A DNA stretch of 63,630 nt, filler included, from Intoshia linei (GCA_001642005.1; 6 parts of 6 records of this genome joined end to end with filler, not necessarily neighbours in it), one strand, 5' to 3'; positions 58,126 to 63,630 are shown, counted from the whole stretch's first letter. Program-made: numbers and translations. The notes: generated from the letters alone by a model not told the origin.

Positions 58126-59631
58126 TTTATACTAATTATAAATGCACATGATCTTTATATCGATATCATTTTGATTTTTATAATTTACATAATTATTAAA
58201 TATCCTTAGATACATCTATTCATTTAAAGAGATTTATTTTTTTCTTATTATGTATATCGGATAATTATATAATAGAATAGAATACGATAGTACAAAGAAT
58301 CTGAAAGTCATGTAGATATTAAGTTTATTATTTGAACTAATTTATTTATATTATGATTACTTATCGTCGATAAGTAAAATTTTGTATAGGCATATACAAA
58401 AGGAATGTCTGGATGAGTTACCGTTTAGATTAGTTAACAGTTAAAAGCTACAATTTAGGAAAACACTATTTCTAATACAGTTTTTAAAATTATTAACATT
58501 ACCGTATATCTCAACTTCAGAAACTTGTATTTTCACTATTAAAACCACAACTTACTTATTTTTATATGAAGAGGCCTAGAATTTTAAAAAAATCGCACCT
58601 AATAGTTACTTCCAGTTAACATACACAAAATTTTTTAATCTAACAAATTGAAAATCAAACACCTTCACGGTTTTATTCATTTTTTTTATTTTGTAACTGT
58701 TTATTACAAAAATTATTCAATAACTAATTAAGAAATTTTAAGAAAAGATTAATCTGATACAGTTTATTCCATTTGTCAAGAGAAAAAATTTTAATCTCAG
58801 AAATTTACACATTTCCAGTCAAAAATAACTTAATATATTATCAACTAATATTTTTCAAATTGTTGAATTACAAAAAAAAAGAAATGTTAATATTCATCCT
58901 ACAATTACGAAAAAAATATGAATTGACACATTTGAAATACAGAAATATGGGTTTCAATGCCATAAATTGATTTTTATGTTTTTTTAATTATTGCTAAGTA
59001 ATTTCTCATTTTAAAAACTTTCAAAGTTTATCAAGACTCTTGAATCAAGAGTTAGCAGAAAAAAAACTCATCTTATAGCAAGGACAGCTTAAACCAGGAC
59101 GGAATACGAGACATTCTAGTAAAAAAGATTGTAGGCAGAATTTTTTTTCGCTCAAAAATATATAATAATGTTACGTAAAGATATAGTGATTTATAATTAA
59201 GTTACAATAAAAACGACATTACTTTTGAAATGAGCTAATAAATAACAATACCGCGTTTAACATTTAAATAACATTTAATCTTTTTNNNNNNNNNNNNNNN
59301 NNNNNNNNNNNNNNNNNNNNNNNNNNNNNTTAATTAATTAANNNNNNNNNNNNNNNNNNNNNNNNNNNNNNNNNNNNNNNNNNNNAAATATAAAAATGAT
59401 AATAACAAAGTTGTATTACTTTTAGTAATTCGTTGTTGTGGTTAAATTTAAATTTTAAACAAAATGTTTTGAAAATGAGAATTTGAGATTGAAAAGTTGC
59501 GAAGGAATGAATTATATACATTTCTTGATTGGAAATGTGTAGACGTTCAATGCATATTTTTTCTGAAATTGTAGGATCAATATTTACATTTTTATATTTC
59601 CAATTATTTCATTCTAATTTTTTAAATTTAG

Positions 59632-59921
59632 AAAACAAGTGATTGTTGATTTTTATGACGAATTTTCAATAAACAGAAATTTAAAACATGTTGGACTAAA
59701 CTTGTTTTATTCTGATAAGCAAGATTTGCAAAGTTTAATACTATCTAAAGATGTATCGCGATTAGTCAATTTAATTACATTAGAGGATGTTTTGGAGGTA
59801 TTATTTTCAATAATGTTTATTTAAAATTTTTTAGGTTGCTGAAAATATCAATTCTAATCCACTAAGTTTGGTTTCTATTGGAAATCCCAAGAAAATGCCC
59901 TATTTAGATTCTGTCCAATAA
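59632..59921 (+). CDS. UQCRC2: 3' exons of an M16-family protein, most like cytochrome bc1 core protein 2 (partial; 59632-59797, 59835-59921)
   Basis: ...LVNLITLEDVLEVAENINSNPLSLVSIGNPKKMPYLDSVQ* resembles the core-2 C-terminus (VT..DV..A....SM...GNL...P..DEL). 37-nt GT-AG intron. Upstream exons not seen; a gap lies at 59286-59385. Confidence 0.65.
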
Positions 59922-61331
59922 ATTTTGATTGATTTGATCTTTATATACAACATTATGAGGGTTCGTCCAGAGTACTGATAATATCTTCAATATACAATAT
60001 TATTCCAATGTTTACATAATTACCAGCTTGACTTGGTAATAGGATTAACAGCATTAAATTTACTCAATTTCAGTAAAAATAAAAAATTTAACTACAGCTT
60101 GTAACAAGGACGGCTTAAACCAGTATACAGTAGTCTTTGCTTGTAATGTATAAATTGTTGCGGAAAATAATAATTTGATCTGTCACATGTGTTATCTAAA
60201 TGATCAATAATTTTTATGGGGTCTCTTAATATCAGGGCGTCTAGTTTGATTTTACAAGTGTCTCTTAATTTCATTTAAAGGTTGTTATACAATAGTTGCG
60301 ATTTACATCGTTTCGGGTTTCATTTGCAATTATATGGTTTTTATAATAAATATTTAATATTTTAAGTTTTATTCATATTAATTTATTATGTAAAGTGACC
60401 GACACCATAATGTTCAGGCCTGTGCGAATATTATTATTAAAAAGTTTGGAAAATTGTATATTATACAGTTTAAATCAGAGCCGTTTTAAAGCATGGGCAA
60501 TATGGGCTGTAGGCCAGGGCCCCAAATTAATAAAAGTACTTTACATTTATATCTTAAGAATCAGTTTATAAGTTTTGAAGTGTGGGAATTCAAATAGCTA
60601 GAAAGAAAATAGTTTAAATAATCAATGTTCTGGTAATTATTCAATTTAAAATATAATGTTTTTATTAATACTCAATGAAATAAGACTCTAAGTCTCCAAC
60701 GAACAGTATGCCCTGTCTTCTAAACAGGGTACATAAAAATTTTTTATCGCTTCGCTTAAAATTTTCAATATCAAAATCGAAATTTTCGGCATATTTTCTT
60801 TCGATTATCAATAAGGTTAAGTCCAATAATTTAACTTAAACTCTGATAACAAATTAATGTACATAAAACGTAAAGAATGATAACAAGCATAATTAAACGC
60901 AATTTGTTGGGCCCTATAATTTTTTTTAATTTAACACAATGTCAATATACAAAGTAAAATATTTTATGCCATATTTGTCACTCCAGGGGGCGACTGCCCC
61001 TTGCACCCATCTAGATCCACTACTGGATCATCATAATATTTATAATAATAATCATTAATTAATCAACATTAATGTGATAATTTGAAATCCTTCTTTCATT
61101 GTGATCGATTTTTACCTTATTGTTGAAATTGACTTTTATTATCTCATTTAAAACCTTAAAATCCATAATAAAACCTCATTTAAATTATAAGAAAGTTATA
61201 ATTAACATTTAATTACATTACATTGCCATACAAATAAACTAGAAAAAGGACACATTTTTGAATTGATTTTTTGAATAAAAAATTGATCTACTAATAATTA
61301 ATAAATCAAAAAAATAATATTTAAATGTTTA

Positions 61332-61841
61332 TTAATGTATTATAATACATATCAAAATAACAAAATAAACAATAATGACTCTTAACAATTCATTAAAACT
61401 TTTAAAAAAAAGAATGGACAGTATTTGAACACTGGAATTTGAAATGCGATAAGAATTTGGACTTTTATATACATGAACTAAATAACATTAAAAAAAATAC
61501 AAATATTAAAACTACATCTATTTCTATCCAATTGACTGCACAGTACCAATTCATTCCTGTAGCACAGGCACGATAAATTTTCAATTCTTCCGTATGTATT
61601 TTCTTTTAAACCTTTACAACCGTGATTTGAAATATATTGACAATATCTACCATGTGTGTGACTAAAATATATAATTTTAATATGTACTATTAAGATTATA
61701 CCTGAGACAATTACAAAACAAGTTAAATTGGCACAATCCACCGTTTTGGCAACAGTTACTATTTGGGGTAACTTTAGGTTCGTATAACATGTTGAAGTAA
61801 TTTTGAAATTTTAAAAATGATATTATGGTATTTACTGCCAT
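61332..61841 (-). CDS. EGF-CFC family protein (Cripto/Cryptic/oep-like); exons 61841-61702, 61661-61516, 61477-61332
   Basis: Spliced: ..SNCCQNGGLCQFNLFCNCLSHTHGRYCQYISNHGCKGLKENTYGRIENLSCLCYRNELVLCSQ...NSSVQILSILFFKSFNELLRVIIVYFVILICIIIH*. It shows the truncated EGF spacing CC-x5-C-x5-C-x-C-x8-C, a CFC-like domain and a hydrophobic tail. Introns are 40 and 38 nt. The true 5' end and signal peptide are uncertain. Confidence 0.85.
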
Positions 61842-62671
61842 CTGTCTCAATTTTAAGACTCATTTTATTGGATATTGCATTTAGTAAAATGCTTATTCAG
61901 ACATACGAAACAAGAATATTTGAAATGTTCAGAATGTCACTCGTTTGAATTGAAATGTATTGTATATTGTCAACATGTCAGTTGACATTATTTAAAATTG
62001 TTGTATATTATTGGTTATGATTCATACTAGTATTAATTCTATTGGTTGTGACTAAATGACTAAATTCCACTATAACAGAAAAATTCACCATAAAGTTACT
62101 ATATTTTCTTGTTAACAATTTTGTATGAACCTAAAATTCCATTTATAAAACAAATTAAATATATAAAGAGTTCATTGATTTTGCACTAAACTTGATAAAT
62201 ATTTTAATTAATATCATGAAAGGCTTTCAATTCTTCTTACAAATTAAAATAAATAAATTTGAAAATGTTATATCTATGTATTCTTTAAATTCCATTAAAA
62301 ATATTTTAAAATATTCAATTTTAATTTGCAAAGATAGCTAACATTGTATCCCATATATACTGCTTTGTGGTGCTTCACTAAACAACTAAATCAATATCAA
62401 CAAAATGACGTATTTAAAAAAACAATTATTAAAAAATCCTCAAAAATAGAATTGATCAATAGTGTTATTGAATCAACACTTTCATCTTAATCAGATGAAT
62501 ACAATATTTTTAACTTATAAAAACACAAGTCAAGTCAAATACAATAAAATAAAATTTCATTTTTACACATTTTAGTAAACATGTAAATAAAGTTAAGTAT
62601 GTTATTAAATAATGTTCATAAAATAAGACAATAAAAAATACATAACAACCCAAATTTAAATTATCGTTGTA

Positions 62672-63630
62672 ATGAGTTCACCTCAAGATATTATGAATAG
62701 ATTTAAAGGAAACCCTAAAGGTGCTAGCGTTGGTTCAGGTATCATCTTCTTGGGAGCTTCGCTGGCTTATGGAATATACAATTCAATTTATACAGGTATT
62801 AATAAAAGGTTTTTGTATATCGATTGAAACTTATTATTAGTCTATCAATGTTAAAGTTATGCATTTTACGTGCAATAACTTAATAGTTTCGTTGTAAGTT
62901 GTTTTGATCATAAATTGTAATTGTAATCATATTACTTTACCGTCAGCAAAGTATAAAAGTTGTTTAGTTTTATTTTCAATGATATAGTTACGTTATTAAT
63001 TTTTTAGTTAATCCGGGGAATGCATCAATTATTTTCAATAGAATTGGTGGAATTCAAAAAACGATCAAAAAGGAAGGTATTCATTTTAGGTATTGAATTA
63101 TCTTAAATATATTCATTAATACCAATAAAAATTAGAATACCTTGGTTTGAAAGGCCCATATTTTACAATGTACGTAGCCGACCATCTAAAATTACCTCTT
63201 TAAGTGGTTCTAAAGGTAATATGTGTTATATAATGGATGTAAGAAAAATATAATTTATACTGTCAATATTTAAAAAGTTTTTAAATTTTAAAATTGCCAA
63301 AATTCTGCCGATTGTTAAGTTTACGCCGTTTAATCAATCTAATTATTTTCATTTATTATAACTAGGGCAAGCAAAAGTTAATAAAGTTAACTTTATTTAA
63401 CTAAATTTAAAATGATGGACAACAATTTATTTTGTTTAAGATGCAATTGCAATGTCTCGTTTGATAAATTACATTATGTACAGATACATAGGGATTCATC
63501 AAAACAGAATTCTTTAAATACTGTTATTCCTATACGAAAATACCTAAAAGTTAAGAGTGATTTTGCATTGGTTTAATGTTAGAAGCTTTTTTGTCAGCAG
63601 ACATACCATTATATAAATAAATTTGAATTA
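62672..63630 (+). CDS. PHB2: Prohibitin-2, 5' part (runs off the window)
   Basis: MSSPQDIMNRFKGNPKG..GASLAYGIYNSIYT|VNPGNASIIFNRIGGIQ..EGIHFR|IPWFERPIFYNVRSRPSKITSLSGSK, three GT-AG exons to about 63214. Confidence 0.93.

Follow-up and report, generated by a model that had tools for sequence, protein, structure and literature searches.

A transcribed Intoshia linei gene with tiny introns, a Cripto-type EGF domain and a CFC-like module of four cysteines

Introduction

Does the genome of Intoshia linei hold a relative of Cripto, and if it does, how much of the vertebrate protein would be left in it? EGF-CFC proteins, the family of Cripto and one-eyed pinhead, were long held to be a deuterostome invention; since 2022 they have been known in gastropods, annelids and brachiopods, where their role seems to be Nodal-independent. 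In Cripto, Thr88 is an O-fucosylation site needed for Nodal signalling in chordates, and His120 and Trp123 make contact with ALK4. The six cysteines of the CFC domain reportedly pair as C115-C133, C128-C149 and C131-C140, an assignment that goes back to Foley et al. in 2003, who are also said to have modelled the domain on the pacifastin-type inhibitor PMP-C and to have likened it to VWC. The question is raised by positions 61332-61841 of the window, the whole stretch of 63,630 nucleotides. There an initial annotation had proposed an EGF-CFC gene that becomes readable once two very short introns are removed. We asked whether this gene is expressed, whether its frame encodes a protein, and to which family that protein may belong.

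Results

A spliced gene on the minus strand

We used Logan contigs from three runs (X1, X2 and X3), all from one study; the runs carry two organism labels, yet their sequences are identical at this locus. The library type is not on record; the contigs leave out short GT..AG intervals, as assembled transcripts do. The two proposed introns proved exact to the base. The joint from 61661 to 61702, which skips 40 nt, occurs in two contigs of X1 and in X2 and X3, with 146 letters on its shorter side, and the joint from 61477 to 61516, which skips 38 nt, occurs in contigs of X1, X2 and X3, so that both junctions for which the initial annotation had called for transcript data are present in all three runs. 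Both introns (61662-61701 and 61478-61515) read CT..AC on the plus strand and hence GT..AG on the minus strand, with GTA at the start and TTTAG at the end. A third intron of 40 nt, absent from the initial annotation, lies in the 5' leader, where contigs of X1, X2 and X3 join 62059 to 62100. One X1 contig (record 3, 1019 nt) covers 61376-61477, 61516-61661, 61702-62059 and 62100-62512, and on 61516-61661 and 61702-62059 the contigs of all three runs have 0 differences from the genome. We conclude that the minus-strand gene is real, transcribed and spliced, and that it comprises three introns of 38-40 nt and four or more exons. Where introns of this size interrupt small domains, a gene is missed by annotation based on ORFs as well as by annotation based on domains. 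The features of the gene are these:

62100-62512, minus strand: upstream non-coding exon (5' leader), from an X1 contig; all three frames are stop-rich, there are 7 ATGs, and the exon reaches at least to 62512
62060-62099, minus strand: 40-nt GT..AG intron in the 5' leader (GTAAC...TTTAG), from the joint in X1, X2 and X3
61702-62059, minus strand: exon with the remaining leader sequence (61842-62059, 6 ATGs), then the coding sequence from ATG 61841 to 61702 (46 codons and 2 nt), from contigs of all three runs
61640-61754, minus strand: Cripto-type EGF-like domain by cysteine spacing, with six Cys and a CC start, interrupted by an intron
61734-61736, minus strand: codon of Leu36, at the position of human Cripto Thr88, by residue count from ATG 61841
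61662-61701, minus strand: 40-nt GT..AG intron in phase 2, splitting the EGF domain between the fifth and sixth Cys, from contig joints
61516-61661, minus strand: coding exon 2 (48 whole codons), holding the final part of the EGF domain, a linker of 7 residues and a four-Cys CFC-like module, from contigs and translation
61538-61618, minus strand: CFC-like module with four Cys, C-x15-C-x-C-x7-C, at exon 2 residues 15-41
61478-61515, minus strand: 38-nt GT..AG intron, from the joint in X1, X2 and X3
61332-61477, minus strand: coding exon 3 (47 codons and stop TAA), from translation, with contigs reaching 61376 at the furthest
61338-61379, minus strand: C-terminal hydrophobic segment of 14 residues (Kyte-Doolittle), followed by one His

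After splicing, the frame runs from ATG 61841 to the TAA at 61334-61332, the stop codon that had been assigned to it before, and gives a product of 143 residues. Exons 1, 2 and 3 contribute 46, 48 and 47 codons, and the two junctions split a Ser codon and a Phe codon, respectively. Exon 1 terminates in CCQNGGLCQFNLFCNCL, the split codon AG|T supplies the Ser, and exon 2 opens with HTHGRYC. An in-frame TGA (61862-61860) lies in the same exon as ATG 61841, so the coding frame cannot begin further upstream. At the other end, an AATAAA (61333-61328) overlaps the stop codon. The contigs end at 61376 (X1), 61379 (X2) and about 61419 (X3), so roughly the last 45 nt of the frame, and the stop codon with them, lie beyond the transcript evidence and are read from the open genomic frame.

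The frame is open and cysteine-rich beyond chance

The sequence piece around the locus has a G+C content of 25%, and at this composition a random codon is a stop with a probability of 0.087, which gives P = 2.2e-6 for a run of 143 open codons. Ten cysteines fall within the 59 residues from the CC pair to the last Cys of exon 2 (binomial P = 2.3e-6). Both signals exceed chance, and we take the frame to be real coding sequence that is kept across two junctions.

The 5' part of the transcript is unfavourable for translation of the 143-residue frame. The leader is at least 630 nt long and holds 13 ATGs upstream of the coding start, one of which, at 61863, is the start of a 29-codon frame running across the main start codon. 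By hydropathy the N-terminus is a weak candidate signal peptide: its best 9-residue Kyte-Doolittle mean is 1.84 (residues 2-10), and the hydrophobic stretch is interrupted by Asn, Thr, Ser and Lys. The leader ATGs and the weakly hydrophobic N-terminus count against efficient translation and secretion. Together with contigs that fall short of the stop codon and the loss, described below, of one disulfide pair and of the receptor-contact residues, they are what one would expect of a transcribed, untranslated or decaying locus, whose spliced RNA would be non-coding or a relic and whose frame would be the remnant of a former EGF-CFC-like gene. Such a relic would hardly keep 143 codons open across two junctions in DNA of this composition, however, and it also sits poorly with an even number of ectodomain cysteines, with splice sites that are intact and used in all three runs, and with a polyadenylation signal that the stop codon overlaps. 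We regard a relic as improbable.

A Cripto-type EGF domain with Leu at the Thr88 position

Read across the confirmed 40-nt intron, the first six cysteines are spaced CC-x5-C-x5-C-x-C-x8-C. This spacing is identical to that of human Cripto-1 (TDGF1) and zebrafish one-eyed pinhead, and the exon translations bear out the Cripto-type EGF domain that had been proposed. The first five-residue loop contains NGG, a Phe directly precedes the fourth Cys, and the domain ends in exon 2 with G-R-Y-C; Cripto-1 has the same NGG and Phe and a G-R-x-C. By general standards, too, this is an EGF domain, with six Cys in EGF order and the NGG and G-x-x-C motifs. Database support for it is weak because the intron splits the domain: a phmmer search of the PDB with exon 1 gave one weak match, the EGF1 domain of factor VII (E = 1.5), and in the ESM Atlas exon 1 fell among generic EGF clusters with scores of 0.78-0.81 (below 0.9).

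Two residues of the Cripto EGF domain have kept their identity. Gly35, the second G of NGG, is the equivalent of Gly87 and Phe42 that of Phe94, both of which are conserved in all reported EGF-CFC orthologues (PMC9907556). Two others differ, as the initial annotation had it: Glu107 is Gln, and Thr88 is Leu36, at the very codon that had been named, which leaves no O-fucosylation site. On this ground the EGF domain had been called apparently Nodal-incompetent. The Leu is indeed there, but it is not special to this gene, since it is a published gastropod state (PMC9907556). Thr88 is kept in some deuterostome lineages only; elsewhere one finds Leu or Arg (gastropods), Met or Ile (annelids) or Val (brachiopods) (PMC9907556). 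With the site so variable outside chordates, the Leu counts against function as a Nodal co-receptor and not against membership of the EGF-CFC family. The Leu-to-Thr rescue of zebrafish oep, the key experiment that had been suggested for this gene, has already been done for a relative: wild-type Crepidula EGF-CFC does not rescue oep, and its L56T variant does (PMC9907556).

With its single EGF domain, its spacer and a hydrophobic segment close to the C-terminus, the protein also resembles membrane-tethered EGF-receptor ligands of the TGF-alpha or Spitz type, which combine one EGF domain with a transmembrane segment. Receptor-binding EGF ligands have about 7 residues in the first loop (Cys1-Cys2) and 10-13 in the second, whereas the corresponding loops here have 0 and 5 residues. 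A cytoplasmic tail is absent, and the extra four-Cys module is foreign to such ligands. We considered a ligand of this kind highly improbable and rejected it, as the loop lengths do not fit.

A four-cysteine module in the CFC position

Exon 2 continues beyond the EGF domain with a linker of 7 residues between the last EGF Cys and the first Cys of a second module (8 residues in human Cripto-1), which has the form C-x15-C-x-C-x7-C. We compared this module by eye and ungapped with the human C115-C149 sequence printed in PMC12075867. Its four cysteines fit the CFC frame without C128 and C149, the absence of which had been noted before and holds in this comparison, with the other four in frame. The first Cys and the equivalents of C131 and C133 are spaced exactly as in human (15 residues, then C-x-C), and the equivalent of C140 lies one residue later. 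Human H-D-T-W corresponds to E-N-T-Y, which places Glu at His120 and Tyr at Trp123, again as previously read. The residue after the C133 equivalent is aromatic, and the equivalent of L138 is a Leu. The position of C128 is taken by Asn, inside an N-L-S glycosylation sequon (61571-61579, minus strand). In all, the ectodomain contains 10 cysteines, an even number. Outside the cysteines the by-eye alignment has a hand-scored BLOSUM62 value of about -6, slightly better than random, so the likeness to CFC is carried by the cysteine frame.

The second missing cysteine would have a counterpart in unspliced RNA. A TGT codon (61516-61514) straddles the donor of the 38-nt intron (T|GT), its second and third bases being the GT of the donor, and a Cys at the C149-equivalent distance is consequently encoded by unspliced RNA only. 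The distance of this Cys from the C133 equivalent is that of human C149, and the unspliced frame, the ORF 61478-61741, ends 12 residues later at the stop 61480-61478. It is a possibility that the 38-nt intron was formed out of former coding sequence.

Taken strictly as a CFC domain, the module has four of the six cysteines and no equivalents of His120 and Trp123, residues that are conserved in nearly all reported EGF-CFC orthologues (PMC9907556). Spiralian orthologues are described as keeping both residues, except for the Trp in Spirobranchus, and their CFC domain is described as conserved (PMC9907556), unlike the Glu, Tyr and four cysteines found here.

Sequence searches with the exons

All searches were run exon by exon, which makes them weaker than a full-length test. 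Pfam returned no family for exon 1 or exon 2 at E up to 10. The PDB contains a mouse Cripto CFC structure, and a phmmer search of it with exon 2 gave no chain at E up to 10. A HMMER search of 1.84 billion representative proteins, with exon 2 as query, gave 0 matches at E up to 0.001, the ESM Atlas gave no usable match for exon 2, and a word-index homologue search with the 87-residue ORF that contains exon 2 gave no candidate. No orthologue was found in these exon and ORF searches, and no similarity to Cripto-1 or one-eyed pinhead was detected with the exon queries. Among the five exon and ORF pieces run against Pfam, an MgtS-like match was rejected as spurious, as it lay on an out-of-frame part of the 87-residue ORF. 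What would tie the gene to the CFC family consists of its cysteine pattern and its layout. The earlier claim of a CFC domain stands in so far as a cysteine-rich module lies at the right distance, but not as a family tie by sequence or profile search, where none was found.

The predicted fold of exon 2

An AlphaFold2 single-sequence model was made of exon 2 only, with a pLDDT of 67.4 overall and 71-78 over residues 11-40. The model has three strands (residues 23-26, 29-34 and 38-43), which carry three of the four cysteines; in the published description of the CFC domain, three disulfides hold three antiparallel strands (PMC11751877). A version of 60 residues that retains the intron folded with a similar pLDDT (69.8) and added nothing.

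Fold comparisons of this model gave matches that were all non-significant. In Foldseek the best E value was 1, and the first rows were inhibitors of the pacifastin family and VWC domains, the latter in rows 2-4 and 6 (collagen 2A, CCN3 and Crossveinless-2, none significant). A second structural comparison returned pacifastins in 13 of the 20 rows with Z of at least 2 (Z 2.0-2.7), matched over nearly their whole length onto model residues 12/16-48 at 9-21% identity. In a wide VIA fold search the collagen XVIII trimerization domain came first (Z 3.2) and a pacifastin second (Z 2.7). Across these searches Z was 2.0-3.4, within the noise range of the tool. Small disulfide-rich beta modules resemble each other, and we treat the pacifastin and VWC matches to the predicted model as a hint in the expected direction, not as evidence.

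Pacifastin inhibitors (PMP-C, SGPI/SGTI) and the N-terminal part of VWC would share with the modelled exon a small, three-stranded, disulfide-rich module of about 33 residues. Those modules differ in having six cysteines, and evidence for an inhibitory loop is absent from the module here, which, unlike theirs, sits between an EGF domain and a putative membrane anchor.

A hydrophobic C-terminus

The hydrophobic tail of GPI or transmembrane type that had been reported is present: the last 15 residues have a Kyte-Doolittle mean of 3.25, and a single His follows the hydrophobic run. About 20 residues upstream of the hydrophobic end, an N-S-S is a candidate omega site. EGF-CFC proteins have a C-terminus that is hydrophobic and can act as a GPI signal (PMC8472190). 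From its sequence the tail would fit a signal of the GPI type or, equally well, a transmembrane tail anchor.

The surroundings of the locus

Upstream of the gene, contigs of X2 and X3 join the acceptors 62128 and 62377 (minus strand) to about 30 letters that aligned at four differing places (62682, 62990, 63139 and 63196), while X1 runs straight on. These joins may stem from a spliced leader, from an alternative first exon or from faulty assembly.

Head to head with the Cripto-like gene lies a prohibitin-2 gene (62672-63215, plus strand), with exons at 62672-62795, 63008-63089 and 63136-63215 and contig-confirmed introns of 212 and 46 nt; its exon 3 matches human PHB2 with E = 3.7e-6. The next prohibitin-2 exon is located either outside the piece or past a repeat (63389-63569), which other contigs match at about 95%. 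On the other side, the 3' end of another plus-strand gene occupies 59386-59925, with a stop codon just before 59925 and introns at 59571-59631 (61 nt) and 59796-59832 (37 nt) seen in X2 only; Pfam gave no match on its exon pieces. Introns in the piece thus measure 37-46 nt, apart from one of 61 nt (X2 only) and one of 212 nt. Published median intron lengths are 57 bp for Intoshia linei and 27 bp for dicyemids.

Two stretches, 59386-59669 and 60380-60900, are represented by dozens of variant contigs with many fixed differences and a summed depth of up to about 1465, and look like expressed dispersed repeats. Within them, a core rich in G+C lies near 60470-60530. The sequence piece, this core included, gave no match in Rfam and tRNA scans.

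Discussion

Which family does the 143-residue protein belong to? On balance we lean towards a strongly diverged, minimal member of the EGF-CFC (Cripto/one-eyed pinhead) family with a CFC domain of two disulfides, a reading drawn from sequence features. It is suggested by the agreement of a Cripto-type EGF domain, the linker length, the cysteine frame of the module, a hydrophobic end and small size, and also by the kept Gly87 and Phe94 equivalents and by a Leu at the Thr88 position as in gastropods.

The principal competitor is a lineage-specific small EGF membrane protein with no EGF-CFC descent, whose likeness to Cripto would be convergent: the CC start and the loop lengths would have arisen by loop shortening, and the four-Cys stretch would be a degenerate half-EGF or another knot. 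We hold this to be quite possible, if short of an even chance. The database signals, which are for generic EGF only (factor VII EGF1 at E = 1.5, Atlas clusters below 0.9), and the zero signal for the CFC-like exon 2 are what such a protein would give. The changes at His120 and Trp123 and the two missing CFC cysteines speak the same way, as do the intron within the EGF domain, with none between EGF and CFC, and the occurrence of NGG and G-x-x-C in most EGF domains. Convergence would, however, have to produce together four independent layout features that match EGF-CFC, namely a CC start with a short second loop, a linker of 7-8 residues, spacings of 15 and 1, and a hydrophobic end. It would also have to account for the Gly87 and Phe94 equivalents and the correspondence of E-N-T-Y to H-D-T-W, and the fold hints point towards the pacifastin/VWC class and not to EGF.

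Within the EGF-CFC reading, it seems rather unlikely to us, though worth stating, that the gene is a true EGF-CFC orthologue from a fast-evolving, AT-rich, small-intron lineage with no reported member, which would have lost C128-C149 and both ALK4-contact residues.

The closest comparison for an EGF-CFC protein of this kind is Crepidula fornicata Cfo-EGF_CFC (Truchado-Garcia et al. 2022, PMC9907556). The two have in common an EGF-like domain, the position of the CFC or CFC-like part, a hydrophobic C-terminal signal, the Gly87 and Phe94 equivalents and Leu at the Thr88 position (L56 in Crepidula), and neither is expected to serve Nodal in the vertebrate manner; the protein here has 143 residues, that of Crepidula 209. 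With human Cripto-1 and zebrafish one-eyed pinhead it shares, beyond the EGF spacing, the distance from the first to the third CFC Cys, the C-x-C and the hydrophobic C-terminus, and with Cripto-1 also three strands, in the predicted model of exon 2 here and in the CFC domain as described (PMC11751877). It differs from Cripto-1 in lacking the Thr88 fucosylation site, in Gln for Glu107, Glu for His120 and Tyr for Trp123, in the replacement of C128 by the Asn of a sequon, in a C149 that is spliced away and in an N-domain that is almost absent.

If the gene is an EGF-CFC member, its product would begin with an N-terminal signal that is short and weak, have hardly any N-domain, and continue with a Cripto-type EGF domain and the 7-residue linker, followed by a CFC-like three-stranded module, a spacer of about 30 residues and a hydrophobic C-terminal anchor signal. 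The module would be held by two disulfides instead of three, in pairs equivalent to C115-C133 and C131-C140. We infer that such a cysteine-rich protein would most likely be secreted to the cell surface and held at the membrane either through GPI or through its own tail. There it may act as an adaptor whose EGF side meets a secreted ligand and whose CFC side meets a receptor ectodomain. With no fucosylated Thr88, and with His120 and Trp123 replaced by Glu and Tyr, it would probably not form a Nodal-ALK4 bridge of the vertebrate type, by analogy with the experiments on the Leu-bearing EGF-CFC of Crepidula.

An expressed, minimal member in which the CFC has two disulfides and both receptor-contact residues are missing would widen the known range of the EGF-CFC family and would serve as a natural test of what the CFC fold can do without. 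It would also support an ancestral job of EGF-CFC proteins other than Nodal co-reception. Were the gene a true orthologue, the family could persist, with some function kept, while fully uncoupled from Nodal-ALK4 bridging.
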